From Macrostomum lignano (lineage: Eukaryota), in assembly GCA_002269645.1 (NCBI GenBank), contig NIVC01003837.1, forward strand, positions 1-64,000: 64,000 nucleotides of DNA. The letters are read 5' to 3'. The position numbers and the translations under genes were made by a program. The notes below the pieces were generated by a model that saw nothing but the letters and a program-made list of their open reading frames with translations, did no database searches and was not told where the DNA came from. Positions 7,357-43,078 of the stretch are shown in pieces. Position 1 is the first letter of the stretch, and each line of letters starts with the position of its first letter.

Positions 7357-18764
<11,408 letters not shown>

Positions 18765-19136
18765 TTTGGTCGGGCTTTATGTAAATTAACCCCGAAAGCC
18801 GGAGCGAAGGCAGTTCGGTTGAGTCGACTTTATAATTAGTGCTCAGGTAGGTATATTTAAGGCGTGCCGCAATGACGCAGTGAAAAATTCCTTTGAGACC
18901 AGTTGCGATAAAAAGATAGAGAGATTCTAAGAAAGTCTCGTTTCAAACTGTGACCCTGCGAAGATACGCTGAACTTCTGCTTTGGAAGAAAGAAAATGTA
19001 TTTATTTTCTTACCTGCGTTCAACAGAGATCGGAGCTATATAGAAAAATCAGAGACTGCTTAGGGAAACCGGATTGTTCTTTTCTCTCGTTTCAAACATG
19101 ACCTTATTTGAGGCTAATACAGAGATTCGCCGCTTC

Positions 19137-19190
<54 letters not shown>

Positions 19191-20093
19191 TAAATGCACA
19201 CAGTCTTGCTTTGGTGGGGACTCGAAGCTCTGTTGCTTGTACACGTGCGTACCTTCTCTCTTGAGAAAATAAAGAATTCAACGCACAAAACAAATTGCGC
19301 AGTATGGCAAAAATGACGAATAGAAAGCCCCCCCCCGACTGGTGGTCGAATAGTCAGAGAAAATAGGAATTAAAATGAGCTGCAGGTGGCTGTGTTGCTG
19401 TGCCCCACTGCCCCACTCCTGTGCCTTGGCCGACTATGGCTGGCACCGAGTATGCATGCCCCCCCCCCCAGGTTGCCTTACCTGTTTGAAACGAGTGGCA
19501 TCATTATTAGCGAACTCTACCTCTCTGACCCACCTCTCACTGTCCCTGTCTATCCTCTGCGTTATTCCTATTTGGCATTTCTTCTGCTTGACAGCTCATT
19601 TCTGACCTTCCTGTTCTCTTGGACACATAGCTTCTGTTCTGCTCTGTATAAACAGTATGCCGAGTACGTGCACGGGGTTCTGGGGTGTATAAATTGGATG
19701 GAGAGTTACCTAATGCTGGAACTGCACATACAAAAATAAGGGCAAACACACGCAAAATGGCATACATTGATTAAATAAACAGTCTACTTATTAGCTTACC
19801 GAATTTCCTCCTTGATTTCCTCAATAGAAAAGCATTAAAGCAGACAACACGGGATGGAAGTCATCAGGACAAAAATCAGCAAAACAGTTATAGTTAAGAT
19901 AAACAAAAAAACAAAAACAACAAGGAGTGACGACACAATTCATAGACATTAAAATTGTTTAAGGAAAAAGGTGGGCAAACAAAAATTTAATTGAATACCT
20001 GCAACTGCTGAGAATTCTAGCTATAATCCCACCACAAACTCAACCAAAACCAGCAAAACTGAAGCATACAGATGCCGAACAACATTTATTTGT

Positions 20094-21692
20094 TTAAATA
20101 TCGGGTCTACTCAATATTGGGCAGAACCGCATTGAGGCGTCTCGCACTGCTCTCTGGCTTACCTTCGCGTGATGTCGGAACGCCGTTGCTGCTTCCTCAG
20201 CTGCTTCATTGCTGGCTCCGAGGCCAACAGTGCTGAGCTCGTCATAGCTAAAATATCTGGTCATCTTTGCTTTCAGATTCTCTTCCTCAAATGTGGGAAT
20301 AGATGCCTCCTTCTTAGGCCTTGTGCTAACAGTAAGGTCTTCTGCGGCATCGAACGTGGCCAGGATGGTTGGATTCTCGTAGCTAAATATGAAATCGCTA
20401 GACTTATTCCTGGTCAGCTGCTGCTCCTTTGACTTGGGCTTCTTCAATATTGACTTCGGCTTCTTCATAGCAGCAACTTGGCTGGCGCTGGGGCTGGAAC
20501 CCACTGGGTCCGAGTACAACGACGAGTTGAGGTCGGAGGCCCTGTCAATGTCGATTGACATGCCGTCGTCGGCGCTGGGATCGATGTACCTGCCCGACTC
20601 CGACTTTGAAACCGTTCGAATAGGAATTCTGCGACCGTAAATATCCTGCGAGGACAGCTGCTGCTGGGTGTCCGACATCGCCTGCTGACTGTGATAAGAT
20701 CCATCGCTTGACTGTCTGGAGTGCTGGTGCTGATGACCGGACTTCTTCGGCAGAGTGGTGTAGTCGCCGGCTCCCCGCTGCGCCCTCTGCTGCTTCAGCT
20801 GCTCATCTGAGATGTACATGTAGTCCGAGCCTCTGCCGTGAGACTTCGGTGCTGCAGCTGCCAACTGTTCAGCCTTGCTCCTGCTTCTCTCCGGATCCTC
20901 TTTGGTCACCTCAACGAAGGTGCTGCCAAAGCTCGGCCGCTTTTGCACCCGAGGCCTTCGATGCAGTGAACTCGAAGAGCTGCTCTCGTTGCTGCTGGTT
21001 CGTCTCACGCTGCTGGATGACTCCTGAGTCGGCTTCCGGCTCGGCATTGGGGCCGTCTCCACGAATAGCTTGCCCTGCTTGATCTCGATAGCTTTCACGA
21101 TCGGCTGATAGGTGTCCTCTTGTATCGCCTTCCTGTGCCGTGGAGCCTGCGGCTGCGCCACGTTGGCCGTAGATTTGGACAGGTGGCTGCCCAGACTCTG
21201 CTTTGACAATTGACCGTGCGCAGCGCTTGTGTCCAGCACGTAGTAGTGCTTCGCCGCCTCCTTCTTTGGCGACTCGTAGCTTCTTTGTTGCGTTCGAGAG
21301 CTGTGCTTTGAATTGTAGGCGTCAAGCGTGCTCGGGGGGTGCTGCATGCGCCTGCTGCTGCTGCTGCTGTTGCTTCCGATGCTACCGGAATCCATCAGTA
21401 CCTGCGATGATGTACTCTTTTTCAGTATGGATTGAAGCGGCTTCTCCTGCTGATGATCTTTGGCGTGGAATGTCTTTTTTGACTTCATGACCCGGTTTGA
21501 AATCATGTGACCGCCGAAGCCCAGCTCCGAGCTGCACACATAGTCGCTCTCTTGCTGCTGCGGAGGCTTCAGTTGACTTTTTGGACGGTACTCTTTCGGC
21601 GTCTCTTGCGTACGGGCACTTGCTTCGCATGTTTGCTCTTGATCGCCAAAAGTAAGATCCGATAAAGAAGAGGATCTAGCAAACTTTATCAT
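20094..21692 (-). CDS. Intronless 532-aa Ser/Gln/Lys-rich, probably disordered protein of unknown function
   Basis: Long ATG-started ORF with GC-rich coding composition against AT-rich flanks. AATAAA lies just after the stop codon. No recognisable domain. Two SILKK motifs. Confidence 0.7.
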   Translation of the reverse strand: MIKFARSSSLSDLTFGDQEQTCEASARTQETPKEYRPKSQLKPPQQQESDYVCSSELGFGGHMISNRVMKSKKTFHAKDHQQEKPLQSILKKSTSSQVLMDSGSIGSNSSSSSRRMQHPPSTLDAYNSKHSSRTQQRSYESPKKEAAKHYYVLDTSAAHGQLSKQSLGSHLSKSTANVAQPQAPRHRKAIQEDTYQPIVKAIEIKQGKLFVETAPMPSRKPTQESSSSVRRTSSNESSSSSSLHRRPRVQKRPSFGSTFVEVTKEDPERSRSKAEQLAAAAPKSHGRGSDYMYISDEQLKQQRAQRGAGDYTTLPKKSGHQHQHSRQSSDGSYHSQQAMSDTQQQLSSQDIYGRRIPIRTVSKSESGRYIDPSADDGMSIDIDRASDLNSSLYSDPVGSSPSASQVAAMKKPKSILKKPKSKEQQLTRNKSSDFIFSYENPTILATFDAAEDLTVSTRPKKEASIPTFEEENLKAKMTRYFSYDELSTVGLGASNEAAEEAATAFRHHAKVSQRAVRDASMRFCPILSRPDI

Positions 21693-23526: not shown

Positions 23527-23786
23527 CAGGGGCGTCGCCACCGGGGGGGACAGGGGGCAATGCTTTGTCCCCCCACCCCATCTTTATTGACCTGCTATGC
23601 AAATCAATAATTTTGCTGCTTCAGGGCGACAAACATAGCGCATGCAGCGCTAAAATGAGTGCCTGCGGCGCTGACAACACCGATTCTCAGAAAAAATGTA
23701 CATGTAGAAATTTATTCATGTACATGTACGTCGTAAAATTCATTGCTTTGTGTCCCCCCAACAAAAAACCATGGCGACACCCCCTG
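23527..23786. mobile_element. MITE with CAGGGG...CCCCTG termini (hAT-like)
   Basis: Imperfect TIR CAGGGGCGTCGCCA / TGGCGACACCCCCTG. The internal segment ATGAGTGCCTGCGGCGCTGACAACA also occurs at ~41560-41630. The TSD is not clean. Confidence 0.65.
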
Positions 23787-25727
23787 GCAGCATATAATAT
23801 TGACTATCTTTCTATACAAAGGCAAAGGTGCCAAGTCAAGTGTATTCAGTGAGCAAAGCTGCAAAATTTGGACCAGCTTTTAGGCTTAAAATTTTTTATT
23901 CTCGTTGTATGTTTCTTTCAAACAGACTAACCCAGCCCACGAAATGTTTCTAAGAATTAAAGACAGTTCTCAGGTATGCCGTCTCAGTCTCAGATACACT
24001 TTCCGGCCAGCCTCACTCGATTTTCTAGCGATGCAAACTGAGCGCCTCTTTCGCGTGGTTAGCAATGGCAGGGGTCTTTGAGCAGTAAAAAAAATTCGAG
24101 CACAGACCTTCCTACCCTCGAATTGTACATTGAATTTGTTTTAATGCGTTGCTAAGTCGGTGAGGCTTGAGTTATTAGTAAGACGCGATGTCGCATTGAG
24201 TTTGGATGGTTAATGAGCCCTCGCTAGCTTGCTAGTTGCTTGCGATACTCGCTTGCGATACTTATTCCATTAAATTTTTCACCTCTTTTTACGAAGAAAA
24301 AAATGTACGTTTTAGGGGCTTCCAGTTGCACCCAGTTGACAATAGCAGTCTAATTTCCTGCTTTGTTAGAAAGAAAATAGTGGAAAGACTTTTCAGTCCG
24401 ATAAGTAGCGGTTACAAGCGTGTATGCAGAAACTATACTTAAAGCATGATGAAATACAACTTTTCCATCTCTCAACCCCAAGCTAGAAGTAACCTATAAG
24501 CGTTCGTATCTTTGAGTAGACTCTTCAAAAAAAGAGAAAAAGCATACAGTTTTTTGTTAGCAACAGTTCGCTTCCAGGGAATAAGTGTTTCAATTTTAGG
24601 CCTAAAATCTGACTGTCGAATTTTGTTATTTCCACTCTTATCATAGAATTTGTTTACTCCTGATTCACACTCAGTTTAATCAATGGGAGCTTGTTTTTCG
24701 ACGAAATCCGGGTATGAGGTACTGCAAGACGATGTACGTTTCCCAGCGAGTACCGTAGAGTATGATCAGTGGAATCGATATTTTTTATGCTTCTACACTG
24801 TATTTTTGGTCATTTGCTTTTGATTTTCCTGAGATGTCAAGTCTTGGGGGGTTTCTGAGATGTGAGGCGGCGGCTTGGTCAGGCGAGAAGTCTGCGTTTC
24901 GTCGACCTGCTTTTAAGAGACGCTGAAATCTGCGACCCCCGCGGACTCGATTGCCCAGGATTGCTGTAGTTTGTTGTTGTTGTTGTTGCTGAGATGTCAA
25001 GTCTTGGGGGATTCCCGATATGTCAAGGCTTAAGAGGGAATTGCTGAGTTGTCAAGGGGAGATCATATTTTATTGAGGGATTTGCATGAACTGTCGAGGC
25101 GACTACATGATTTATTGAGACGATAGCAGGAATTATCTAGCAGGTAGGACGATTTTAAAGAGAGTAGCATGACATATTGAGGGAACAACATGGTGTGTTG
25201 TAGATTTACAGGTAAAGCATGAAACTTCGAGGGGATTTCTCGGTAAAAAGTTCCTGATAAAGCGTTTCCAGGGAATAGTTTGAAATTTCCAGGTATAGCG
25301 TGAGAGCAGGAGAGCAGGGGATATCAATGAAAAATTGCAAGAGATATAGCTAAGAGATATCGATGGGATGGCTAGAGATGCCAATTGTTAGCAGGGGATA
25401 TCAAGAGATCCAGAGAGCTAGAGATACGAGCTATCAAGAGATAGCTAGAGATATCAAGGGGATAGCAAGAGTTATTTAGCGCATAGTATAGGGAATAATT
25501 TAGGGGATATCTAGGTGAGAACATAGCGTGATTCAGTTTAATAGTTTTTTATTTCCTAGGATATTAAAAGCGTGTTTTTCTTTCCCCAGAGGGGGATTTG
25601 GTATGCTAGTTCCCTTTATTGCTTTGAGTCGCACTAGGCAGCTGCAACTGATGTACTCGTACGTATTTACCTTTTTTGAAGATAAGCTTTAACTTAGCTA
25701 ATTGGATCGCCTTTAACTTTTTGCAGA

Positions 25728-28207
25728 TTCCATTCAATCGAATCTACCAGCCAGGAAGAAGAAACGAGGCAGAAGCCCCAATTCCTCGGAGGACGAAGAA
25801 CGAAACGAGCAAAAAGTCCTAATTCTGGAGGAAGGCACCCCCATTGCCTGCACTAGCCGATGGAATACTGATTACGCAATAGTTGCCAAAGATCTTCACA
25901 ATTCCAAACTAATCAAACCTAATGAAAACCGCCGCGCCTGCCACAAAATCGAAGTCATAACTTATAGATCCGATACGGTAGCGATTCGACAGTTGTGCGA
26001 CTTTTAACATCTTTGTCTGGCTATTAAAGCTTTTGCTGACAATCTTCGGCTGTCAGTCAAAAGTTGTCGCACGGAAGACACTCTGGTTGGACACCATGCG
26101 ACAGCGTTTGTACAAGCTGGAATACAAATGCAGTAATGGAGTCAAAGTGAAACCAGAGCAGGTTTTGCAACGTGCGATCTCTCGAATTGGCGAACGCAAG
26201 TACGATTCCAAATGGAACAATGACCAGGACTTCGTTCGCTGGTGCTGCACCAAGCACTGCGACAACCAGAAGTATTTTGAAATTCCAGTCAAGTCAATTG
26301 ATCAACTGAAAAGCGTTTTTGACGCAAACGGAAGGAAAAAATATGCACTTATTGATGCAAACGGAAGGAAAAGATATGCACTTATTGATGCAAACGGAAA
26401 GAATAGATATGCACTTATTGATGCAAACGGAAAAAATAGATATGCACTTATTGATGCAAACGGAAAGAATAGATATGCACTTTTTGATGCAAACAGAAGG
26501 AAAATATATGCGCTTATTGATTCAAAACTGTTAACTTTATTGTCCAATTTCACTGAGCTCAGACACCAGGATAAATCACATATGGTACTTACATGTACTG
26601 TAGACAATTTGTGTAAAGACACTTCATGCTGCAGTGGAAACAGTTCGTGTTGCAGTGAAGGCACTTCATCTTGTTGTAGAAACACTTTGTGTTGCAGAGA
26701 AGACACTTCGTGCTGCAGAGAAGACACTTCGTGCTGCAGAGAAGACACTTCGTGCTGCAGAGAAGACACTTCGTGCTGCAGAGAAGACACTTCGTGCTGC
26801 AGAGAAGACACTTCGTGCTGCAGAGAAGACACTTCGTGCTGCAGAGAAGACACTTCGTGTTGCTGTGAAAACACTCCGTTTTGTTGCAAACGTTATAAGT
26901 ACTTCTTTACGGTTCAGAAAGTCGAAGTAAAGTCAAGAACAAGAAATAAAGAAATAAAGAGCTTCGGGCTTTCAGCTGTTTCTTAAGAGACTGCAGAGAC
27001 TGCAGAGGCTGCAAAAGAGTTCTTTGAAAAAAAGACAAAAAAATTGATCGGCAAGTCAATCTGGTTGAACCGTCGTGGCACAGTTCAGACTAAAATCGAT
27101 AGCGAGACCTTCTGCAACTGGCTACAAAAGTCAACAACTCCCACGCTAGATGACATTGAGCTGCTGCCATGGGCTGGCGACTGTTGCTGCAGTTGCTGCA
27201 GTTCTCGTCTTTGCTGTGACTCTAAATGCGGTCAACAACCGACATTCAACAGTCATGAATTTGGTGAACACGTTGTCGGTGAACACGTCGAAGTAAGCCC
27301 GAAGCAGGGTACTCCGTACCATATGCTTATCACGGAGATCGTTAATCCAAAAACCAATGATTGCGTTTACAAAGGCATAACCTCCCGATATAAACAAGGT
27401 ATTCAACATGAGCAATTTAAGAAACTCAAAGCAATCGTAACCTTCGACCAGGTTGAGTTGCTTGCGTTTAACGACGAACCCAAAGATTTCACTCTCGCTA
27501 ATAGAGAGGCTTCGGGCACAATATCTGATTGCTGGAATTTCTTCTGGATCACATTTCTTGTGCTGTCGTTTATCGTGACGCATTTCCGGTTATTAAAAAT
27601 TCTTGCTGTGGCGGCGCCGCTATTTAAAAATGATAATTGCACAACTCAGCACCTTTTGAAGCCTCCGCTGTGTTTTGACGTTCTTGATGAAGACTGCAAC
27701 TGTCCATGGGAGCAGATCATCATAATCGTTTATGCCAGCATTGCTGGGGTTTGCTTACTCATCTTGATCGGACTGCACTTGTTCGAAGTCCCGTGCTCGA
27801 GAGGCTGTGTCAACGGGTGCCGTCACAGACCGCTTAAGACTACTCGCAAACGGATGAGCTGGAGTTTGATTGAAAGCTCAATTAACTTTGTGATTGTTTT
27901 TGGTTTGATTTATTTTCAACTTTGGCTCAGGCAAAAATTGAGTAGTGAGTCGAGATTAGGCAACACATATTCATTTCTCATCACGTCTGCTGTCTCCATC
28001 TGCTTGTTTCTCATCAGAGCGCTGCTGCCAAGATGGATCCGCTGCTGCTGCCCGAGCAAGGATGCGGCTTACTGCTCACACTGCTGCCTCTGCTGCTGGT
28101 GCTCTGGCAGCACCGAATGTTGCGGGGTGGCTGATCACGAAGCCATCATTACCAAAGAAGAGGTCCATTTCAACAGGCAAAATGAACTAGCAGCAGCAAA
28201 TGCATAG
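25728..28207 (+). pseudogene. LRAT/NlpC-P60-like multi-domain membrane protein, copy A (disrupted)
   Basis: Colinear with the ORF at 35555-38410. It lacks that ATG, has a +1 T at ~26003-26006, and has CAA->TAA nonsense at 26984-26986. In-frame 33-bp (DANGKNRYALI x6) and 21-bp (CCREDTS x8) expansions. Confidence 0.75.
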
Positions 28208-29045
28208 ATGAGTGAACTGCAGTTTTCTGGGTTTTGAAAATAGAAATAGTTCAGTACCGCCTTTGCATGGTGTGTTACAGAATTTACTTAACCTAGGAAA
28301 TGATACGCTCGTATTAATTTTTCAGAGGTGTACTATGACCCGACTTTTTTAACGCTATTCTGTCCCATAGTTCCATAGGTTTACGTGTTGCTTGTGTGTT
28401 TTTCTAAAAATTTTATGTATTTTAAACGTGTTGACTATAAATTTTAACTTTTACATTAAACAATATTTTCATATTTTTGATTGGTACATTATTCACATAC
28501 GAGCTGTCATTGATTTAGAAATGATAAATTCACTAGTTACATGCTAGCTGTTAGATCTTATAGTTTTAGTTACAGTTATCTGTGTTGCTTCAAAAAATTC
28601 TCGTTAGTAGCTATTTTTTACTCTAATACATTGCCAATGTGTTAATCCCATTTCTTTTCATTAAAATTGACGTATTCGCGCGAACTTCTCTTATAGCTAC
28701 ATATTAGGTACAGTAGCACATTTTATGCGCTTCCATGAGAAGCGAAGTATAAATTGGAATACAAGAAAAGCTGATTAATTTTAATGCACTCAGTAACATG
28801 AGAGCTCACTCTAAAATATGAGCTGCTGTATTTAAAGTATCGAGTTAGGGAGATCACGAGATGTAAAAAACAATCGCATGAAACCAAGACGACATATACT
28901 GATAAAGTCATTGGCTAAAAGCATTTTTTAGAACTGCTATTGGACGGAGCTGCATCTGTAGCTGTTTATAAAGTCTCAATCATACTCAAACCTGCCTGTA
29001 GAAATTTTCCCATTAAGAAATCCCAGCTGTCTTTGAAAAAGAAGG

Positions 29046-29932
29046 ATGAAATATTCGTTAAGCAACTTCCAAGCGTTTCAAGCGCTTTTCGGCATTGTAA
29101 TCCAGTTGCTGCCTGCAGTGCGGGCTCTGGCGTGTCCGGATCCGTTCAGCCCGAGGCAGGCAGGTGCGTGTTCGTGAGCACTGCTCAAGATTTCACCTGG
29201 TGCGAAGCCAACCAGCGGTGCGCTGCAATCCAGGGCGAGCTGCTCAACTCGTACAGCTCGCTGCAGCTGCTGGCTCAAGGCAGCTTTCCCAGCCTCCGCT
29301 GCAGCTGCTGGCTCAAAGGCAGCTTTCCCAGCCTCCGCTGCAGCTGCTGGCTCAAAGGCAGCTTTCCCAGCCTCCGCTGCAGCTGCTGGCTCAAAGGCAA
29401 CTTTCCCAGCCTCCGCTGCAGCTGTTCCCTGTGGCTTGGAGTCAGCGACTTGGCCGATGAACGGAACACAAGCAAATCAGGCTGGGTGAAGATCAACGGC
29501 AATGGAATTTTTCCCCTCGATAATGCTTTGTGGGCTTCAAATATGCCATCTAACAATGGGAATCAGGACTGCTTGGTGCAGTCTGAAGGAGAGGCGCTAC
29601 TCAAGGATTTAAAGTGTTCAACCCGTCGTGGCTACGCATGCGAGTTTGTTGCCAAAGATGAACTGCAGACTGGGCCGACTGGCTCCGTTGCCTCGTGGAA
29701 GCGAACTCCGTTCAAGCGCACCAGCTACAACCCCAGCTCTCGCTACTGCTACTCTGACCTGCAGCAGGTTGGCAACGCAATGAAGTGCGTAGCGGCTGGC
29801 ATGAGATCTGGCAACTGCAGACAAGTGCTGTACAACAGCAAGCTGAGAGCCTGCCGCCTGCTGCTGTTCACCGACGCTCAGGTGGAGGAGGAGATCGAGA
29901 CGAGCGCCGACTGGGTCAAGTTCAGCGTGTAG
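29046..29932 (+). CDS. C-type lectin + PAN-like protein (copy 3); one 1-nt homopolymer frameshift near 29149 (probably error or recent lesion)
   Basis: MKYSLSNF...ALACPDPFSP then EAGRCVFV...WCEANQRC...LWLGVSD...NQDC...DLKC...YACEF, then YCY...KCVAAGMRSGNCRQVLYNSKLRAC. The paralog at 39249 has CCCC where this copy has CCC. Confidence 0.7.
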
Positions 29933-29974
29933 GGCTGGTGCAACTAGAGAGTTGCTGGGGGCGCCCGGACAGGA

Positions 29975-30095
29975 ACGCTCTAGTACACACGCTCACACAG
30001 GGTGTACAGCGGCTCTTTGACTCTCTAATCGTCAGGCATGTGCACTCTCTGTGTCTTCGGGGTCGGCCCTCAGGGCTGGGAATCGCACGATGTGT
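29975..30095 (-). mobile_element. Partial copy of the SINE body seen at 41121-41490
   Basis: ACACACGCTCACACAGGGTGTACAGCGGC...GGCATGTGCAC matches ~41265-41380. Confidence 0.5.
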
Positions 30096-30097
30096 GA

Positions 30098-30450
30098 GTG
30101 CATCTCAGCTATTCCCCCATGAGCCTTAGCATCTCAGCTATTCCCCCATGAGCCTTAGCATCTCAGCTATTCCCCCATGAGCCTTAGCATCTCAGCTATT
30201 CCCCCATGAGCCTTAGCATCTCAGCTATTCCCCCATGAGCCTTAGCATCTCAGCTATTCCCCCATGAGCCTTAGCATCTCAGCTATTCCCCCATGAGCCT
30301 TAGCATCTCAGCTATTCCCCCATGAGCCTTAGCATCTCAGCTATTCCCCCATGAGCCTTAGCATCTCAGCTATTCCCCCATGAGCCTTAGCATCTCAGCT
30401 ATTCCCCCCTGAGCCTTAGCATCTCAGCTATTCCCCCATGAGCCTTGATA
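30098..30450. repeat. 29-bp minisatellite (GCATCTCAGCTATTCCCCCATGAGCCTTA), ~12 units
   Basis: Unit read directly. Confidence 0.95.
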
Positions 30451-31074
30451 TCTCAGCAACTCTTATATAAGCCACAATATTTTAGAAATGTCCCCGTATG
30501 TCTTTCCCTCACAGCCATTTCTCAGGAGCCAATTCAGCCACAGTATAATTCCAATATTTCCCCATGAGCCTTGACATCTTAGCAATTCCCCCAATTACTC
30601 CTATATGTTTGATAGCGCGCTTTTTATGGTTGACATGGTGATTATTTTTTTTCGTTCTTTCGTTGAGTTTTCGTTTCTATGAATGAAAAGAAGTTTTTGA
30701 TAAAAAATTACATTGCTTCACCAGCACTGCTCTAGAAGATAAGCGCAGCCCAGCAAAATTATCTTTGAATTTAATTGTTAAATACGAGCGGTCTGGATGA
30801 ACCTGCATAGGAGACGATCATTTCTGTCACAGGTCACAGAGATAAATCCAACTGAGCTCCACAAAGTTACATGTACATAAAATTCAATAAATTAATCTAT
30901 AGCTCTCTTAGCATTATCTACTACTTTATTGTGTAAGTTCTGTCTTGTATATCCATATAAATTGTAGTATATCGATATTTTGCAATAATTGCGCCATAAA
31001 TATTACACGACTACCATCAGATTTGCACTATACTCCCCCAGATTAACACTGCTTCCCTTAGATTAGCCCCACTC

Positions 31075-31490
31075 CCCAGATTAGCACTACCCCCAGATTA
31101 GCACTACCCCCAGATTAGCACTACCCCCAGATTAGCACTACCCCCAGATTAGCACTACCCCCAGATTAGCACTACCCCCAGATTAGCACTACCCCAGATT
31201 AGCACTACCCCCAGATTAGCACTACCCCCAGATTAGCACTACCCCCAGATTAGCACTACCCCCAGATTAGCACTACCCCCAGATTAGCACTACCCCCAGA
31301 TTAGCACTACCCCCAGATTAGCACTACCCCCAGATTAGCACTACCCCCAGATTAGCACTACCCCCAGATTAGCACTACCCCCAGATTAGCACTACCCCCA
31401 GATTAGCACTACCCCCAGATTAGCACTACCCCCAGATTAGCACTACCCCCAGATTAGCACTACCCCCAGATTAGCACTACCCCCAGATTA
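31075..31490. repeat. 17-bp minisatellite (TTAGCACTACCCCCAGA), ~24 units
   Basis: Unit read directly. Confidence 0.95.
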
Positions 31491-32117
31491 ACACTTCTTC
31501 CCCCCCCCCCAAATCTGCATGAAACTGCATGGGAGACAATCATTGTGACAGGTTACAGAGATAAATTCTCTGCTTCAATGCAGATTCGAACTGCCGACCA
31601 TCTCCTTAGCCTGTTCCACTCTGCCTACAACGCGGCTATTTCGAAGAAACACATTTTACTGTTCTCTTAACAGTTATCATTTATCCCCTCAGCAGTCAGC
31701 AGTTCTCCTCTCGGCCGGCTCCTCAGTCTCCTCAGTAAACTGCAATGATTCTTTCAATAGTATAAAAATTTTCTCAGCATTTATTACGGCTCACTAATTA
31801 ATTTTCGATACATATCGGCAGTCCTAATGCACAACACAGCGTTTAGCGATACCTTCAGCAGATTAGCAGCATCGTCGGCAGTTTGGCAATTTCATACTTA
31901 TATGATGGGATCAGTAATACTCAAAGCAGTTTTAAAAAAATGAAATTTGCTGAACGACTTGTGCCGAATAGCAAAAATAATTCATTAAGTGTCAAAGTGT
32001 GCCTTACTAATAAATAAAACGTTTTCCAATTATCTGCAAATGAATGAATCAATTTTAATTGTCCCCAGTAGGCTCACTCGAACCTGGGACCTTACGCCTA
32101 GCCTAATCCCAGTCCTA

Positions 32118-32311
32118 GGGCCGTATGCAGAAAGCTTAGTCCAGACTAGCCAGTCCGGACTTGGGTAGTTCAGTCTATGGTCTATGGTCTAGCTACCTTA
32201 GTTCTGTCTATAGTAGACCGGTCTAACTTTGTGTTTCTGCATACCAACTCCAAGTCCAGACTAGCTTTTCAAGACCGGACTACCCTAGACAGAGCTTTCT
32301 GCATACGGCCC
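32118..32311. mobile_element. PIF/Harbinger-type MITE (194 bp)
   Basis: Perfect 19-bp TIR GGGCCGTATGCAGAAAGCT flanked by 3-bp TSD CTA/CTA. Confidence 0.85.
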
Positions 32312-33840
32312 CTAGTGTCTTCTGCATATTGATCAGAGGGCGATAAAATCAGCCATATATGTTTTTATATGGCTGAGCAGAGCAGCAAGCAGAGCGAATG
32401 TACAGTTGTGTGAAATCTATAAATAGCAATTGTCTATGCAGTCCGCCAGTCAGTCAGGGTCAGATTGTACACACGCAGCCACTGAGCATTCCTAGCTCCC
32501 TTGCTCACTGCAGCCAGTGCAGTAGGCGAGAGAGAAGTTATGGCGCAAACTCAATTGGAATTGAAATTCAGTCAGTCAGAGATTTTGGGGTCGTATATTA
32601 AAGCTGTCGTAGCGTAAGTTTTATCGAACTCGTACGTCGGAACTTCTACACTGCAGAGACAGAAGCTAAGAACGATCTTATCTTTATAGAACGGGCCCTT
32701 TGACTTTTTCTAGTCTTCCATTGAAGGCATTGGAGAAACTCGTTTTTCGAATATTTAATACTCCTTGCGCAAAAGCCTATTGACAAAATTCGAACCTACA
32801 ATTCAAAAATTTTCTTTTTTTGGTGAAAACGCGATAAAAATTGATTCAGGCTTTCAGACTGTGAAGCGTTCTACATAGACAGGCATAGATTAGAGATTTA
32901 GTATAGGTAGAAGATAGAAGACAAGCATACAAACCTTAGAGATTTAGTACATTTAGATTGAAAAGAAGAAGATTAGATAGTGGAAAGACTGCAGTCCATA
33001 ATTATGCTGCTGTTGCAAACGTGTATGCACGTGAGATGCGGTAACAAAGCGGCCTCCAAAGCCAAAGCAACAAAATATTTAGGCAGACGGGCCGCGCGTA
33101 AATTGAGGCAGTTGCCCAGCGAGACGGCGACGCCCCCCTCACCCCACCCCACACGGATCCACAGAGGCGGCAGGGATTGGCTGATCACTAAAGCCGATTT
33201 GCACGCACCCATGCAAACCAAATCAAATTTAAAGCATAATAAAAAGCAATACAACTTGTCCATTTCTCAACCCCAAGCTAGAAGTAACCTTTAGAAGCGT
33301 TCGTAACTTAGCGGCTACTCTTCAAAAAAATAGAAAAAGCATACACTTTTGTTTGCAAAAATTATCATAAGTGTCAAAATCTTGAAGCTTAAAATCTGAA
33401 TGTCGAATTTTGTTTATTTCCATTCCAATTTGTTAAACTTTGTTTTACTCCTAATTAACACTCGATTTAACCAATGGCAGCTGGAAGCTCAACAAAATAC
33501 GAAGTACAAGTAAGTTGTCAAGCGAGTACCGTGAAGTAAGATCAGTGGAACGGATACTTTTTACGGTTCTATAGACTGTCTTTTTGGTGATTGGCTTCTG
33601 GATTTTACGAGGCCATTGGAAATTGTTCAGGGATGGTGGCTTTCTGATCTAGGTTACTAATTACTGTAAATTATTTTTATCCTTGATAGATTACTCGTTG
33701 CAATTAGCTCATCTTTCGAATTGTAAAAATTCTACCACTGATATGACTGAATCCCAGACGTTGTTGTTGTTAAACGAGGGTGGGTAGCCTAGGGGTTCCC
33801 GCGGATCAGCCCAGGGAAGGGCTCTGCCGCTAGAGAACAG

Positions 33841-34381
33841 GGTGGTGTTTTACGAACCAAAGTTCAACCTTAAGATTAAACTTAGGATTGAGTTTAGGAT
33901 CGACGTGTTCTATGAAGATAAAAGTCGATCTTAGCTGGGATCCAACTAAGGTCTGACCTAATGGAAGATAAGATCGAACTTACGACTGGTGCGTTTTATC
34001 AAGAGAGACTGTCTATGACCAAAACTGTCATGGTCGGTCTTAACTTTAGGACACATCTAGAGTTGTCCTAAGTTTCAAGTCGCTATCTGAACAGCAAGAG
34101 TCGATCTGTTGGAATAAAATGTTTGCCGTTTTAATTGCTCGTCGTGCGACGAGATGCTCTGCTGGCTAAAATAAAGCTAAAGTTTGACGCCACGCGGAAT
34201 TAGTCTATGGTCAACCCTATCTTAAACTTTCTCGTCCACAACCAAACCTCGACCTTAGCTAAGATCGAGGTTAGAAGTGACTCCTAAGTGTTTGTAAAAC
34301 GCATTTACGGCTCAGTCTTAAGTTCGAGCCTAAGTTGGAACTTAGGAGTCAGTCTTAAGACGCAGTTCGTAAAACAACCCC
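33841..34381. mobile_element. PIF/Harbinger-type MITE (541 bp)
   Basis: 17-bp TIR GGTGGTGTTTTACGAAC / GTTCGTAAAACAACCCC (15/17). 3-bp TSD CAG/CAG (CWG type). It sits within a larger unclassified insert absent from the paralogous intron A. Confidence 0.8.
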
Positions 34382-35554
34382 CAGGGGCCTATCTAACCAG
34401 GGGCATACAGCCTGAGCGGCCCAGATTGGGACCAGGAACAAGGCCTGGTAGAAATACCTTATTGGGGCTACCAGCTCAAACCTTTGGACTAAGACACCGC
34501 CAACCCATAGTGGAATCAGGGACGGTGCTAAGACCGAGTCCACTTGGAGCGAATCTGGGCAGCTTATTTGCCAAAGGCGAGTCTCCGGAAGCGCAAAGCC
34601 GACTGAAAACTCCCCCTATAGGGCTGCGAGCCTCACGGCTTTTTCACTACCCAGCTCTAAACAATATTGGAGTAAGCTTAAGCGGTCCGAGAGAGGAAAG
34701 ATCCTAGTCTACGGAAAAGGCTTATCTATTGGAGCGAGTCTGGAAGCTTATTGCCAAGGGCGAGTCGATCCTGTCAGGCAGGAGACCCTTCTATACCGAT
34801 AGGGCTGCGAGCCTCAAGGCTTTTTCGCTATCCAGCTCAATAAGGGCTAGGCCAAGGGGTTGGATAGGGCACAAGGTCAGCAAGAGGAACCCGGACTCAG
34901 CCGGTTTTCCCGAATCGGGACGAACTTATTCACCAGGACTCCAATCCACTGTCAGAGATAAGAGCCGAGACACAAAAGCAGGGAACTTCCAGAGGAGACA
35001 GCAGGTGGACCAAGGCTATAGAGCGCCCTCACCGAGGCGAGATTTGCAACTCCAAATATTGGGTGGTTCAAGTGCCAAGATAAAAACACAAAGGATAAAA
35101 GGCCACAAAGGCAGGGATAAAAACAATAAGGAGGATCACACAACCTCAGGGGCTCAGCCTCAGGGCTGGCATCAACTTTGTGAATGGTCGTCTTTCCTGC
35201 AGGGCGGGTGCGACCAAGGGGCTCAAGTCCCGTTCTAGCCACACTGCAGTCCAGAATTCCAGGTACACCCCCATAAACCAAAGCCGAGGGCCGAAATAAT
35301 TGCAAAGAAATAGGGTTATATAATCCCAACTTCAGAAACCCGCAAATCCCTTCTCATTTCAGCTGCTATAACATTTTCACAAGCCTCGACTACTAATAAT
35401 AGCGTAAAAGCAAATTTGTTTTAACAACAATTGAAATTCTGTTGCCACTTGCCACTATTGCTTTGAGGCGCAATAGGCAGCTGAAACTATCATTTCTTGA
35501 ATCTGAACTTTAACTTTAGCTAATGGAATCACCTTTAAATCTTTGCAGATTTCA

Positions 35555-38410
35555 ATGGACCAATTCGGAAGCTCTGACCAGCCAGGAAGACGAAACGTGC
35601 CCGAAGTCATTCTGCAGGAAGGCACCGCCATTGCCTGCACTAGCCGATGGAATACTGATTACGCAATAGTTGCCAAAGATCTTCACAATTCCGAACTAAT
35701 CAAAACTAATGAAAACCGCCGCGCTCGCTACAAAATCGAAGTCATAACTTATAGATCCGTTACGGCAGCGATTCGACAGTTGTGCGACTTTAACATCTTT
35801 GTCTGGCTAATAAAGCTTTTGCTGACAATCTTCGGCTGTCAACCAGCAGTTGTCGCTCGGAAGACACTCTGGCTGGACACCGAGGGACAGCGCTTGTACA
35901 AGCTGAAATACAATGGCAGTAATGGAGTGGAAGTGCTGCCACCAAATGAGGTGCTGCAACGTGCGATCTCTCGCATTGGCGAACGCAAGTACGATTCCAA
36001 ATGGAACAACGACCAGGACTTCGTTCGCTGGTGCTGCACCAAGCACTGCGACAACCAGAAGTATTTTGAAATTCCAGTCAAGTCAATTGATCAACTGAAA
36101 AGCGTTTTTAACGCAAGTGAAAACGCAAGTAAAAGCGCAAGTGGAAACGCAAGTAAAAACGCAAGTAAAAATGCAAGTGAAAGTAAAAGATATGCACTTA
36201 TTGATGGAAAACTTTTAACTTTTTTGTCCAAGGGCACTGCGCTCAGACACCAGGATAAATCGCATATGGTACTTACTGTAGACAGCTTGTGTAAAGACAC
36301 TTCATGTTGCAGTGGAAACACTTGGTGTTGTTGTAAAAAGACTTCGTGTTGCAGTGAAGACACTTCGTGCTGTTGTAAACGTTATAAGGAATACTTATAC
36401 TTCTTTACGGTTCAGAAAGTCGAAGTAAAACCAGGAACAAGAAATCAAGAAATCAAGAGCTTAGGCCTCTCGGCCGTTTCTCAAGAGACTGCAGAGACTG
36501 CAGAGGCTGCAAAGGCTGCAAAAGAATTCCTCGAATTCCTCGAAGAAAAGACAAAAGAATTGATCGGCAAGTCAATCTGGTTGAATCGTCGTGGAACAGT
36601 TCAGAGTAAAATCGATAGCAAGACCTTCTGCAACTGGCTGCAACAGTCAACAGTTGACACGCTAGATGACATTGAGCTGCTGCCAGGGGCTGGCGACCGT
36701 TGCTGCAGTTGCTGCAGTTGCTGGAGTTCGCTTTGCTGCGGCTCGAAATGCTGTCAACCAGCGACATCCGACGGTCATGAATTTAGAGTCGGTGAACACG
36801 TCGAAGTAAGCCCGGAGCAGGGTACTCCGTACCATATGATTATCACGGAGATTGTTAATCCGAGTACAGATGATTGCGTTTACAAAGGCATAACCTACCG
36901 ATATAAGAAGCCTATAGATAATGATAAAGGGCAACTTAAGCAACCTAAAAAAGGTATGCAACATGAGCAAGATGTGCAACACGAGCAAGATGTGCAACAT
37001 GAGCAAGATGTGCAACATGAGCAAGATGTGCAACATGAGCAAGATGTGCAACACGAGCAAGATGTGCAACATGAGCAAGATGTGCAACACGAGCAAGACG
37101 TGCAACATGAGCAAGATGTGCAACACGAGCAAGACGTGCAACATGATCAAGATGCGCAACACGAGCAAGACGTGCAACATGAGCATGATGTGCAACATGA
37201 GCAAGATGTGCAACATGAGCAAGATGTGCAACATGATCAAGATGTGCAACACGAGCAAGATGTGCAACATGAGCAAGATGTGCAACACGAGCAAGATGTG
37301 CAACATGAGCAAGATGTGCAACACGAGCAAGATGTGCAACATGAGCAAGATGTGCAACACGAGCAAGATGTGCAACATGAGCAAGATGTGCAACACGAGC
37401 AAGATGTGCAACATGAGCAAGATGTGCAACATGAGCAAGATGTGCAACATGAGCAAGATGTGCAACACGAGCAAGATGTGCAACATGAGCAAGATGTGCA
37501 ACACGAGCAAGATGTGCAACATGAGCAAGATGTGCAACATGAGCAAGATGTGCAACATGAGCAAGATGTGCAAAACGAGCAAGGTGTGCAACCTAAGCAA
37601 GATGTGCAAAACGAGCAAGGTGTGCAACCTAAGCAAGTTGAGAAACTCGAAGCAATCGTAACCTTCGACCAGGTTGAGTTGCTTGCGTTTAACGAGGAAC
37701 CCGAAAATTTCATTGACGCGAACAAGCAGATTTCGGGTACAATATCTGCTTGCTGGAATTTCTTTTGGGGCACATTTCGTGTGCTGTCGTTTATCGTGAC
37801 GAATTTTCGGGTATTAAAAATTTTTGCTGTGGCGACGCCGCTTTTCAAACATGATAAATGCACAACTCAGCGCCTTCTGAAGCCTCCGCTGTGTTTTCAT
37901 ATTTTTGATGAAGACTGCAACTGTCCATGGGAGCAGCTCATCATAATAGTCTATGCCAGCATTGTTGGGGTCTGCTTACTCATCTTGATCGGACTGCACT
38001 TCGTCGAAGCCCTGTGCTCAGGATGCTGTCGTCACAGGCCGCTTGAGATTACTCGCAAACGGATGACCTGGAGTTCGATTGAAAGCATAGCTGACTTTCT
38101 GATTATTGTTGGATTGATTTATTTTCAACTTTGGCTCAGACAAGCCTTGAGTGACACATTCAACAACGCAGGTTCATTTCCTATCACGTCCGCTGTCTCC
38201 ATCTGCTTGTTTCTCATCAGAGCGCTGCTGCCAAGATGGATCCGCTGCTGCTGCCCGAGCAAGGATGCGGCTTACTGCTCACACTGCTGCTTCTGCTGCT
38301 GGTGCTCTGGCAGCACCGAATGTTGCGGGGTGGCTGATCACGAAGCCATCATTACCAAAGAAGAGGTCCATTTCAACAGGCAAAATGAACCACCAGCAGC
38401 AAATGCATAG
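35555..38410 (+). CDS. LRAT/NlpC-P60-like tandem-domain, Cys-rich multipass membrane protein, copy B (intact, ~951 aa, with ~37 x QHEQDV insertion)
   Basis: LRAT-type signature EGTAI...TDYAIV...PPNEVLQRAISRIGERKY...NNDQDFVRWC (canonical HxxIY...RA...G..Y...NCEHF). 3-4 hydrophobic helices near the C-terminus and poly-Cys clusters. A splice acceptor TTTGCAG lies just before the ATG, suggesting an upstream non-coding exon (donor GTAAGT ~33509). Confidence 0.75.
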   Translation: MDQFGSSDQPGRRNVPEVILQEGTAIACTSRWNTDYAIVAKDLHNSELIKTNENRRARYKIEVITYRSVTAAIRQLCDFNIFVWLIKLLLTIFGCQPAVVARKTLWLDTEGQRLYKLKYNGSNGVEVLPPNEVLQRAISRIGERKYDSKWNNDQDFVRWCCTKHCDNQKYFEIPVKSIDQLKSVFNASENASKSASGNASKNASKNASESKRYALIDGKLLTFLSKGTALRHQDKSHMVLTVDSLCKDTSCCSGNTWCCCKKTSCCSEDTSCCCKRYKEYLYFFTVQKVEVKPGTRNQEIKSLGLSAVSQETAETAEAAKAAKEFLEFLEEKTKELIGKSIWLNRRGTVQSKIDSKTFCNWLQQSTVDTLDDIELLPGAGDRCCSCCSCWSSLCCGSKCCQPATSDGHEFRVGEHVEVSPEQGTPYHMIITEIVNPSTDDCVYKGITYRYKKPIDNDKGQLKQPKKGMQHEQDVQHEQDVQHEQDVQHEQDVQHEQDVQHEQDVQHEQDVQHEQDVQHEQDVQHEQDVQHDQDAQHEQDVQHEHDVQHEQDVQHEQDVQHDQDVQHEQDVQHEQDVQHEQDVQHEQDVQHEQDVQHEQDVQHEQDVQHEQDVQHEQDVQHEQDVQHEQDVQHEQDVQHEQDVQHEQDVQHEQDVQHEQDVQHEQDVQHEQDVQNEQGVQPKQDVQNEQGVQPKQVEKLEAIVTFDQVELLAFNEEPENFIDANKQISGTISACWNFFWGTFRVLSFIVTNFRVLKIFAVATPLFKHDKCTTQRLLKPPLCFHIFDEDCNCPWEQLIIIVYASIVGVCLLILIGLHFVEALCSGCCRHRPLEITRKRMTWSSIESIADFLIIVGLIYFQLWLRQALSDTFNNAGSFPITSAVSICLFLIRALLPRWIRCCCPSKDAAYCSHCCFCCWCSGSTECCGVADHEAIITKEEVHFNRQNEPPAANA
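36957..37633 (+). repeat. 18-bp in-frame coding repeat (CAACATGAGCAAGATGTG), ~37 units
   Basis: Unit read directly. The paralog has a single unit (GGTATTCAACATGAGCAA). Confidence 0.95.
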
Positions 38411-39248
38411 ATGAGTGAACTGCAGTTTTCTGGGTTTTGAAAATAGAAATAGTTCAGTACCGCCTTTGCATGGTGTGTTACAGAATTTACTTAACCTAGG
38501 AAATGATACGCTCGTATTAATTTTTCAGAGGTGTACTATGACCCGACTTTTTTAACGCTATTCTGTCCCATAGTTCCATAGGTTTACGTGTTGCTTGTGT
38601 GTTTTTCTAAAAATTTTATGTATTTTAAACGTGTTGACTATAAATTTTAACTTTTACATTAAACAATATTTTCATATTTTTGATTGGTACATTATTAACA
38701 TACGAGCTGTCATTGATTTAGAAATGATAAATTCACTAGTTACATGCTAGCTGTTAGATCTTATAGTTTTAGTTACAGTTATCTGTGTTGCTTCAAAAAA
38801 TTCTCGTTAGTAGCTATTTTTTACTCTAATACATTGCCAATGTGTTAATCCCATTTCTTTTCATTAAAATTGACGTATTCGCGCGAACTTCTCTTATAGC
38901 TACATATTAGGTACAGTAGCACATTTTATGCGCTTCCATGAGAAGCGAAGAATAAATTGGAATACTAGAAAAGCTGATTAATTTTTAGGCACTCAGTAAC
39001 ATGAGAGCTCACTCTAAAATATGAGCTGCTGTATTTAAAGTATCGAGTTAGGGAGATCACGAGATGTAAAAAACAATCGCATGAAACCAAGACGACATAT
39101 ACTGATAAAGTCATTGGCTAAAAGCATTTTTTAGAACTGCTATTGGACGGAGCTGCATTTGTAGCTGTTTATAAAGTCTCAATCATACTCAAACCTGCCT
39201 GTAGAAATTTTCCCATTAAGAAATCCCAGCTGTCTTTGAAAAAGAAGG

Positions 39249-39891
39249 ATGAAATATTCGTTAAGCAACTTCCAAGCGTTTCAAGCGCTTTTCGGCACTG
39301 TAATTCAGCTGGCACCTGCAGTGCGGGCTCTGGCGTGTCCGGATCCGTTCAGCCCCGAGGCAGGCAGGTGCGTGTTCGTGAGCACTGCTCAAGATTTCAC
39401 CTGGTGCGAAGCCAACCAGCGGTGCGCTGCAATCCAGGGCGAGCTGCTCAACTCGTACAGCTCGCTGCAGCTGCTGGCTCAAGGCAGCTTTCCCAGCCTC
39501 CGCTGCAGCTGCTGGCTCAAAGGCAGCTTTCCCAGCCTCCGCTGCAGCTGCTGGCTCAAAGGCAGCTTTCCCAGCCTCCGCTGCAGCTGCTGGCTCAAAG
39601 CAACTTTCCCAGCCTCCGCTGCAGCTGTTCCCTGTGGCTTGGAGTCAGCGACTTGGCCGATGAACGGAACACAAGCAAATCAGGCTGGGTGAAGATCAAC
39701 GGCAATGGAATTTTGCCCCTCGATAATGCTTTGTGGGCTTCAAATATGCCATCTAACAATGGGAATCAGGACTGCTTAGTGCAGTCTGAAGGAGAGGCGC
39801 TACTCAAGGATTTAAAGTGTTCAACCCGTCGTGGCTACGCATGCGAGTTTGTTGCCAAAGATGAACTTCAGACTGGGCCGACTGGCTCCGC
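39249..39891 (+). pseudogene. C-type lectin copy 4: near-identical to copy 3 but 3'-truncated (no PAN-like tail), 1-nt frameshift near 39600
   Basis: ~99% identical to 29046-29688. It diverges abruptly after GGGCCGACTGGCTCCG. Confidence 0.75.
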
Positions 39892-40138
39892 TGCGTCTGT
39901 GCCTTCGGGATCTGCCCTCATGAGTGTGAATCGGTCAATTTTTGTGCACAAGCCCCAAACTACAACTATGTGAGTAGTGAACTCGCGTGGGAATCGAACT
40001 AAGGAGTCATGGCGCGAGAGTCAGACATCACCCCTTCTGCCGTGTCACAGTCACATCTGCCCTGGAACTGGTTTAATTGAAGAGTGACTTGAGCAAGCAT
40101 ATTCATTTGCGTACGTACGAAATGAATATTACTAACTC

Positions 40139-41490: not shown

Positions 41491-41658
41491 CCTCCCTACC
41501 TTGTGCTTCGTGTTAATCAATAATTTTTCTTCAGGGAGCCAAAAAAGCGCCTTCGGCGCCAGAATGAGTGCCTGCGGCGCTAAAATGAGTGCCTGCGGCG
41601 CCAGAATGAGCGCTGACAACACGATTCTCAAACTAAAGTAAAGCCATCAGCTGCATAG

Positions 41659-41815
41659 CGGAGTCCTTGGAAACTGAGGATCCTGATGAGAGTCTGGAAC
41701 GACTCTGAGCACTGGGCCGAGTACTCCAGCTTCTCCGTGGGTCCTGAGTCCGACAACTACCGGCTGAGCGTGTCCGGCCTCTCCGGCAGCGCCGGCATCG
41801 GCGACAGCCTCGCGA
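41659..41815 (+). pseudogene. Fragment of a fibrinogen C-terminal (FReD) domain exon
   Basis: WKLRILMRVWNDSEHWAEYSSFSVGPESDNYRLSVSGLSGSAGIGDSL matches FReD consensus LRI.L..W.....AEY..F.VG.E...YRL.V.GYSG.AGDSL. No continuation (H NG..FST.D.DND) follows, and a MITE fragment lies immediately upstream. Confidence 0.7.
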
Positions 41816-42177
41816 CTCGCGTCGCTGCTGGCCCGCACCGCGCATTTAGACTCGCTTTGGGCTGGCGGAGAACTCGTGGCCTCGTGGTCGGAGAGGCTCT
41901 CGCGGCCCGACTGCCACAGCTGCCCGTGGGCGGTGGCGGCTTCGGTCGCGTGATGCAGCACTGCAGCCAGCAGCAGAGTGAATTGACCTGACCTTTAACT
42001 GTCCGAGGGGGGACGCGCGCCGCCTACGCCTGGTCGGCACAGACGTGGAGCGCCTCCTTTCCGAGCCGGGCCGGGCTCTCTCGCTCCTACGGAGCATGGG
42101 GCGCTGGCCCCGTCTATTTCCGCGCCGCCGCGCCGCTAGACGAGCGCTGAAGAAGAAGAAGAGCGACTTGACGAGCG

Positions 42178-42665
42178 GGTTGGAGCTGCATTTGATCTGA
42201 GTGTGGAATGTCGGGTTGGAGCTGCATTTGATCTGACTGTGGAATGTCGGGTTGGAGCTGCATTTGATCTGAATGTGGAATGTCGGGTTGGAGCTGCATT
42301 TGATCTGAGTGTGGAATGTCGGGTTGGAGCTGCATTTGATCTGACTGTGGAATGTCGGGTTGGAGCTGCATTTGATCTGACTGTGGAATGTCGGGTTGGA
42401 GCTGCATTTGATCTGAATGTGGAATGTCGGGTTGGAGCTGCATTTGATCTGAGTGTGGAATGTCGGGTTGGAGCTGCATTTGATCTGAGTGTGGAATGTC
42501 GGGTGGGTTGGAGCTGCATTTGATCTGAGTGTGGAATGTCGGGTGGGTTGGAGCTGCATTTGATCTGAATGTGGAATGTCGGGTTGGAGCTGCATTTGAT
42601 CTGAGTGTGGAATGTCGGGTTGGAGCTGCATTTGATCTGAATGTGGAATGTCGGGTTGGAGCTGC
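42178..42665. repeat. 36-bp minisatellite (TTGGAGCTGCATTTGATCTGAGTGTGGAATGTCGGG), ~13 units
   Basis: Unit read directly. Confidence 0.95.
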
Positions 42666-42831
42666 ATTTTCTCTGTGTGTGGAGCTCACTGCATGCAGAG
42701 CGGGGCCTCATTCGAAGGCTCCGGGACCGGCTTGGAGTCTGAGGCAGCCCGGAGCTGCGACTGCTGCCCGCAGCGGCCTCTGGCGGCAGGGGCTGCCCAT
42801 GCGGGACGGCTGTTGGACTGGGGCTTGAGAG

Positions 42832-43078
<247 letters not shown>

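Follow-up and report, generated by a model that had tools for sequence, protein, structure and literature searches.

A tandem duplication in Macrostomum lignano carrying an LRAT-like gene with replaced catalytic positions and part of a neighbouring C-type lectin gene

The vertebrate proteins LRATD1 and LRATD2 (FAM84A/B) are LRAT-domain pseudoenzymes that lack the catalytic Cys and are presumably non-catalytic. The Caenorhabditis elegans protein EGL-26 is a membrane-associated member of the NlpC/P60/LRAT family in which the nucleophile position is occupied by a residue other than Cys, as it is by Ser in P0001, the only homologue that we identified for the gene described here. In this work we focused on a stretch of 64,000 nucleotides (nt) of Macrostomum lignano (assembly GCA_002269645.1, contig NIVC01003837.1, positions 1 to 64,000 of the forward strand; hereafter the window), in which an LRAT-like gene and a lectin gene lie side by side in two tandem copies, A and B. 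Copy B of the LRAT-like gene encodes a 951-residue protein with one LRAT/PLAAT-type domain, several Cys strings and four predicted membrane helices; to our knowledge LRATD1 and LRATD2 have, unlike copy B, no transmembrane region, Cys strings or tandem repeats. The architecture is undescribed, yet it is a variant of the LRAT-family pseudoenzyme theme. Our reading, to which we give a probability of roughly 55%, is that copy B encodes a membrane pseudoenzyme or scaffold that is restricted to this lineage and probably palmitoylated, and that the gene belongs to a cluster evolving by birth and death.

An earlier note on this DNA had described the locus as a duplicated two-gene cassette. A self-comparison of the region by blastn gave the following units, with the LRAT-like genes inside them.

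25672-29697, plus strand: duplicated unit A, comprising the LRAT-like pseudogene, a spacer and lectin A up to the breakpoint
35493-39901, plus strand: duplicated unit B, comprising the intact LRAT-like gene, a spacer and a truncated lectin B
35555-38410, plus strand: LRAT-like gene copy B, a single uninterrupted, intronless open reading frame (ORF) of 951 residues
35543-35548, plus strand: TTGCAG, candidate acceptor for spliced leader (SL) trans-splicing, fitting the M. lignano motif [T/C]TNCAG
25780-28207, plus strand: LRAT-like copy A, pseudogene-like, with no in-frame start, a frameshift and a TAA stop
27995-29697, plus strand: tract 96-100% identical to 38198-39901, delimited by a sharp jump in the A/B identity profile at 27995

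The two units are co-oriented, and the offset of about 10.2 kb given earlier was confirmed, with a range of 9.79-10.22 kb that arises because copy-specific tandem repeats grew in each unit. The duplication is thus real, but among the four duplicated genes only LRAT-like copy B reads as intact. The TTGCAG lies 7 nt upstream of its ATG, and the ATG at the end of the SL would be in frame; by the acceptor motif and SL sequence taken from PMC8629364, copy B is probably trans-spliced. In copy A the sequence that supplies the ATG of B differs, so that the ATG is absent, and a 44-nt insertion together with a 9-nt deletion puts the start region out of frame with the first domain. A 1-bp frameshift follows at 26002-26005 (a T4 run where B has T3), as well as a CAA to TAA stop at 26984-26986.

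Identity between the copies is 74-91% in the 5' part (to 27994) and 96-100% from there on, the high-identity tract running from the final 70 LRAT-like codons across the spacer and through the lectin. This step at 27995/38198 suggests a recent gene conversion of the 3' 1.7 kb, or else an assembly or polishing effect. In the older part the synonymous divergence (Ks) is approximately 0.15, and the 951-codon ORF of B is still open despite about 10% divergence between the copies. Tandem repeats have expanded inside the LRAT-like and lectin ORFs (26319-26879, 29259-29424, 36110-36379, 36957-37637 and 39463-39627). All six of their periods are divisible by three (33, 21, 12, 42, 18 and 39 nt), and those elsewhere in the window are mixed. 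Copy A has in-frame repeats of its own, 33 nt × 6.3 (26319-26526) and 21 nt × 12.6 (26616-26879); since the expansions differ between A and B, they arose after the duplication. The divisible periods and the long open ORF suggest that selection kept these frames open. Weaker direct repeats were also found outside the main unit, 24453-24827 with 33248-33606 (75%) and 23602-23672 with 41515-41581 (83%); they may be remains of a longer original duplication, or else dispersed repeats.

An exhaustive HMMER search with the repeat-free C-terminal part of copy A against 1.84 billion representative proteins returned one relative, P0001 (UniRef A0A1I8HFC8), an uncharacterised 680-residue protein of M. 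lignano, and a cleaned two-sequence profile run against 5.8 billion proteins again found only P0001. The family is in this respect lineage-specific, as had been proposed. P0001 is 48% identical to the copy B protein over its full length, and its blocks, helices and Cys strings follow in the same order. A homology search with the repeat-stripped B protein gave no match, low-complexity words having probably crowded out the true one. No genomic context was obtained by exact look-ups of B, of P0001 or of the lectin sequences lec1 and P0002 (see below), no match by two metagenome scans with LRAT-like and with lectin patterns, and no article mentioning both Macrostomum and LRAT by a search of the paper library.

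The first domain of the protein (domain 1) has the following landmarks in copy B.

35594-36118, plus strand: domain 1, LRAT/PLAAT-type (Pfam PF04970, E = 6.8e-6, 26.8 bits)
35648-35671, plus strand: WNTDYAIV, at the H-box position
36002-36022, plus strand: WNNDQDF, at the NCEHF position
35792-35836, plus strand: hydrophobic insert NIFVWLIKLLLTIFG within the domain

The assignment of domain 1 to the permuted NlpC/P60 (LRAT/PLAAT) family held, with PF04970 scores of 26.8 bits for B and 25.4 bits for A (cut-off 24.3); P0001 scores 20.0-23.0 bits, under the cut-off. When the hydrophobic insert was removed from B, the score increased to 28.1 bits. The best sequence match in the PDB was the PLAAT3/LRAT chimera 4q95, in the expected register. 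A hidden Markov model (HMM) derived from PLAAT3 gave 7.4 bits on domain 1, a score reached by none of 500 shuffled sequences, and hhalign aligned 59 columns of domain 1 with PLAAT3, ending at NCEHF/NDQDF. As had been noted before, A and B both read WNTDYAIV and WNNDQDF, with Asp at the His as well as at the Cys position, the latter being set by alignment to 4q95 and PLAAT3. P0001 reads FNYKYAIL and WNNSQDF, with Lys and Ser at these positions. Because both catalytic positions are replaced, domain 1 is, as judged from its sequence, an LRAT-family pseudoenzyme domain. We considered NIFVWLIKLLLTIFG as a possible read-through intron and rejected this, as the ORF is continuous, P0001 shares the segment, and in 4q95 LRAT-derived sequence aligns with it.

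The membrane part and the repetitive segments of copy B are located as follows.

37760-38230, plus strand: four hydrophobic helices (residues 736-764, 795-816, 845-861 and 874-892) from a hydropathy calculation
36698-36754, plus strand: Cys string RCCSCCSCWSSLCCGSKCC, its position kept in P0001
38243-38329, plus strand: C-terminal Cys string RCCCPSKDAAYCSHCCFCCWCSGSTECCG, adjoining the last helix and kept in P0001
36957-37637, plus strand: 18-nt in-frame minisatellite of 37.8 copies encoding (QHEQDV)n, in copy B only (Tandem Repeats Finder)

Hydropathy shows one peak in domain 1 and four after residue 736, and thus the three to four transmembrane helices and poly-Cys clusters noted earlier are borne out, with four helices and conserved Cys strings. 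The protein contains 49 Cys in 951 residues, in CC/CxC clusters. No signal peptide is present, loop 1 between the helices has 30 residues with four conserved Cys, and loop 2 is basic. The N-x-S/T sequons all lie in the N-terminal part, and none in the predicted extracellular loops. The topology is probably one with both ends inside and loop 1 outside. A DTSCC-type Cys string and the (QHEQDV)38 tract are copy-specific, the latter being missing from copy A and P0001.

Taken together, these data are compatible with the following sequence of events. A segment of about 4 kb was duplicated in tandem; it contained an intronless gene restricted to this lineage and, of an adjacent gene for a C-type lectin-like domain (CTLD) and a PAN domain, the 5' two-thirds. 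Copy B would encode a polytopic membrane protein whose cytosolic N-terminal part begins with one dead LRAT/PLAAT-type domain bearing a hydrophobic insert, followed by about 300 residues of family-specific sequence interrupted by Cys strings and copy-specific in-frame minisatellites, and then by four transmembrane helices, with a conserved Cys string adjoining the last. Such a protein could act as a non-catalytic scaffold anchored by multiple S-acylations, its dead LRAT domain and hydrophobic insert lying against the cytosolic leaflet and binding lipid, acyl chains or a partner protein without turnover. After the duplication the 3' 1.7 kb may have been homogenised, and the locus would now be in birth-and-death decay, with lesions in copy A and in both adjacent lectins.

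Several observations weigh against this interpretation. The PF04970 match covers only the C-terminal half of the profile (positions 52-116), and the equivalence of the H-box His was assigned by inspection. In the older part the ratio of nonsynonymous to synonymous divergence (Ka/Ks) between A and B is 0.64. A relative-rate test for stronger constraint on B than on A, with P0001 as outgroup, gave no difference (25 amino-acid changes in B and 29 in A, p = 0.68): the intact B changed as much as the broken A, and there is therefore no sign of stronger constraint on B. This is most simply explained by a recent inactivation of copy A. The tract of 99-100% identity could be a polishing artefact, and the 1-bp lesions of copy A and of the lectins, which fall in short homopolymers, might stem from errors in the assembly of long reads. 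Composition is the only basis on which we propose palmitoylation and a scaffold function, and metal binding would suit the Cys-rich and His/Asp/Glu-rich repeats equally.

The earlier note went further and regarded two more regions of the protein, D2 and D3, as decayed copies of domain 1, proposing that the resulting triple-LRAT pseudoenzyme and the secreted lectin are partners in a duplicated module of innate immunity or self/non-self recognition. We consider this explanation unlikely. The regions concerned are listed below.

36167-36697, plus strand: region D2, without assigned fold, with SHMVLT (36260-36277), a Cys-rich insert (36296-36379) and TFCNWL (36623-36640)
36755-36946, plus strand: N-terminal part of region D3, a predicted three-strand beta meander with the conserved PYHMIIT (36827-36847)
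37622-37861, plus strand: C-terminal part of region D3 and first hydrophobic helix, with SACWNFF (37745-37765)

The motif order in these regions, GKLLTF..SHMVLT...ELIGKSIW...FCNWL and GEHVEV..PYHMIIT...SACWNFF, resembles GDLIEIF..HWAIYV...ELVGQEVLY...NCEHF, and the best hhalign matches to PLAAT3, although non-significant (E = 0.46 and 0.56), sit in exactly the registers proposed earlier. AlphaFold2 element orders (strand, strand, strand, strand, helix, strand, helix for D2 and a three-strand start for D3) are compatible with the LRAT fold, in low-confidence models. Furthermore, D3 of P0001 scores 5.0 bits against the domain 1 profile, a value reached by 2 of 500 shuffles. Against this, D2 and D3 have no significant match to LRAT, to domain 1 or to each other. 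Pfam gave no match at E up to 10 and the PDB profiles nothing relevant, hhalign among the three regions gave probabilities of 14%, 0.2% and 0.1%, and, apart from D3 of P0001, the HMM scores fall within the range of 500 shuffles. At the sequence level the two further repeats are therefore indistinguishable from chance. The structural check that had been suggested, an AlphaFold search for three LRAT-fold domains, was run on D2 and D3; the predicted local distance difference test (pLDDT) scores were 37.0 and 55.9, from alignments of 4-5 rows only, and the models are too poor to decide on the fold. The low-confidence D3 model, compared with the PDB by Foldseek, matched no NlpC/P60 structure, and its best E was 0.23. 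As LRAT folds, D2 and D3 are thus unproven rather than refuted.

The recognition part of this explanation draws on the presence, within the same 42 kb, of four CTLD-PAN copies and a partial fibrinogen-related domain (FReD).

29046-29932, plus strand: lectin A, with signal peptide, CTLD and PAN, a frameshift at 29150-29152 and a TATAAAG at 28967
39249-39901, plus strand: lectin B, in frame from the signal peptide through the N-terminal half of the CTLD and frameshifted beyond it; TATAAAG at 39170
2154-2870, minus strand: lec1, an intact single-exon gene with signal peptide, CTLD and PAN (Pfam Lectin_C, E = 2.2e-9; PAN_1)
3491-4126, minus strand: lec2, a CTLD-PAN pseudogene with several frameshifts
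41686-41814, plus strand: FReD fragment (Pfam Fibrinogen_C, E = 1.6e-5, profile positions 97-137 of 221 only)

The extra lectins at 2-4 kb and the FReD fragment at 41.7 kb had been pointed out before, and profile searches identified them as CTLD and PAN relatives and as a Fibrinogen_C match, respectively. The FReD fragment looks like a gene remnant; it adjoins a 36-nt minisatellite (42176-42683) and a (GA)122 run (42834-43078). The neighbouring genes show the profile match and the Cys/WIGL framework that define a CTLD. The intact paralogue lec1, which shows the full design, scores 38.5 bits with Lectin_C (PF00059) and matches the carbohydrate-recognition domain of DC-SIGN (2xr6) with E = 1.9e-6; lectins A and B, damaged by comparison, score 15.8-22.3 bits, slightly under the cut-off of 22.6. 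With PAN_1 (PF00024) the lec2 fragment gave 22.1 bits (cut-off 21.4), lec1 18.2 and P0002 14.5, and lectin A gave no match at E up to 0.1; the C-terminal (PAN-like) block is nearly invariant among the lectin paralogues. The best relatives of lec1 are a CTLD protein of M. lignano (60% identity) and a metagenomic fragment. The latter, a CTLD-PAN sequence on a 967-nt contig (ENA ERZ27315224, contig k141_2599464) encoding P0003, is 55% identical to lec1, and its PAN part is closer to lectin A. It is presumably DNA of a Macrostomum-like animal in an environmental sample.

The description of the two adjacent genes as secreted C-type lectins stood in part: signal peptide and CTLD are present, but neither copy reads through. 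In lectin A a C3 run at 29150-29152, where B has C4, uncouples the signal peptide from the CTLD, within which a 39-nt repeat occurs 4.3 times (29259-29424). Lectin B has lost a G at 39600 and, since the homology between A and B stops at 29697/39901, is without a PAN domain. The sugar-site motifs EPN/QPD and WND are degenerate, with EPS...LAD in lec1, MPS...LKD in lectins A and B and EPS...LKD in P0002; EPN is kept only in P0003.

That the LRAT-like genes travel with lectins was not supported. The LRAT-like stop and the lectin ATG are 839 nt apart on the same strand, which agrees with two of the criteria for Macrostomum SL operons (same strand, less than 1 kb between genes, downstream gene trans-spliced; PMC8629364). 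Yet an LRAT-lectin operon is disfavoured, as a TATAAAG lies 79 nt upstream of the ATGs of lectins A and B, and about 95 nt upstream of that of lec1, and no [T/C]TNCAG acceptor motif occurs within 300 nt upstream of the lectin ATGs. The lec1 and lec2 genes are 21 kb away on the opposite strand and have no LRAT-like neighbour. Since the lectin genes appear to be separate TATA-driven units, the adjacency would have arisen incidentally, when a segment within a lectin cluster was duplicated, which is evidence against a co-evolving module: both adjacencies come from one duplication, whose breakpoint truncates the lectin. An immune module fits poorly with the fact that three of the four duplicated genes are broken, with the short predicted extracellular loops devoid of sequons and with the degenerate sugar sites.

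It is also unlikely that the apparent decay is largely an assembly artefact, with homopolymer consensus errors hiding lectins, and perhaps a copy A, that are intact in the animal. All three 1-bp indels fall in short homopolymers (T3/T4, C3/C4 and G1/G2), and the published Macrostomum assemblies are long-read based, PacBio data being mentioned in PMC8629364. Such errors do not explain the substitution stop, the missing ATG and the 44-nt insertion of copy A, nor the end of homology at 39901 that deprives lectin B of its PAN domain. In addition, lec2 carries several frameshifts, and real pseudogenes therefore exist in the lectin cluster.

A role in metal buffering or sensing at the membrane, exerted by the Cys strings together with the His/Asp/Glu-rich (QHEQDV)38 and leaving the LRAT domain as a vestige, appears improbable to us. 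It would account for the abundance of clustered Cys and for the 227-residue His/acid-rich repeat, which weakly matches a Plasmodium histidine-rich protein profile. The absence of this repeat from copy A and P0001 means that it is not a conserved feature, and the most conserved Cys string directly follows the last helix, the usual site of S-acylation. The proposal that the protein is still an enzyme seems very improbable. Here FCNWL would supply the Cys and [YF]H[ML]IIT the His of a thiol-acyl site, possibly arranged as in non-permuted NlpC/P60 proteins, with the Cys helix ahead of the His strands; this site would transfer acyl chains to lipids or to the Cys strings of the protein itself. No other Cys or His of catalytic type is conserved across A, B and P0001, the His of SHMVLT and the Cys of SACWNFF being variable, and these two residues lie about 70 residues apart, flanking a conserved Cys string. 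With three sequences only, at about 50% identity, the conservation of two residues carries little weight, and the structural models are unusable. A non-permuted NlpC/P60 unit running from the end of D2 to the start of D3 was tried as a candidate and rejected, as the fused segment has no NlpC/P60 or LRAT profile match. We give hardly any credence to a combination of these ideas, an array of three LRAT-derived modules whose one retained Cys-His pair (FCNWL, [YF]H[ML]IIT) acylates its own Cys strings and which is co-regulated with CTLD-PAN lectins as a fast-evolving recognition locus.

In the rest of the window, no Rfam match was found, and Tandem Repeats Finder returned 42 rows in 64 kb, making the window unusually rich in minisatellites. 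A ubiquitin-activating E1 gene with large exons occupies 55030-63056 on the plus strand (ThiF and FCCH at 55030-55785, ThiF at 57796-58644, SCCH and UFD at 62061-63056). Between its exons, 31.7 copies of a 30-nt minisatellite (61297-62251) make up a long spurious ORF. On the minus strand, ORFs at 7357-21692 encode PDZ (9724-10302), ankyrin repeats (14519-15364, after an in-frame TDTK repeat) and FERM_f0 (17898-18764). Among them are two long low-complexity ORFs without Pfam match, one Pro/Gln-rich (7357-8820) and one Ser-rich (20094-21692). Together these ORFs could represent exons of a single large scaffold gene.

If copy B is expressed, its dead LRAT domain on a four-helix membrane body with Cys strings would be an unusual addition to the few LRAT/NlpC-P60 pseudoenzymes. 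The architecture seems to be restricted to Macrostomum. This animal serves as a laboratory model of regeneration and sexual conflict, and its rapidly evolving, lineage-specific genes attract interest. The locus currently bears on no long-standing open question; it is a clean, small example of segmental duplication, probable partial homogenisation, copy-specific growth of in-frame minisatellites in coding sequence and pseudogenisation.

Compared with known systems, the closest likeness is to PLAAT/HRASLS and LRAT (PF04970; PDB 4DOT and 4Q95). The C-terminal half of domain 1 scores above the curated cut-off, WNNDQDF takes the place of NCEHF, the hydrophobic insert of copy B lies in the loop before the matched strand, where LRAT-derived sequence of 4Q95 aligns, and the protein is, by prediction, likewise membrane-bound. 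It differs from these enzymes by the replacement of His/Cys with Asp/Asp (Lys/Ser in P0001), by the unmatched N-terminal half of the profile, by membrane helices that lie about 570 residues downstream rather than directly after the domain, and by some 750 further residues without known relatives. LRATD1 and LRATD2 share with it an LRAT-type domain without catalytic Cys, but no detectable relationship beyond the Pfam family, and EGL-26 differs in architecture and was not matched in any search made. The dense CC/CxC strings, predicted on the cytosolic side with one directly after a transmembrane helix, recall CSP-alpha/DNAJC5 and SNAP-25, although there is no sequence relationship and acylation of copy B is a prediction. 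Among the lectins, lec1 has the CTLD fold signature of DC-SIGN/CD209 and the mannose receptor; unlike in these, EPN and WND are replaced (EPS/LAD in lec1, MPS/LKD in A and B), a PAN-like domain is fused at the C-terminus, and lectins A and B carry a tandem repeat inserted before the WIGL strand.

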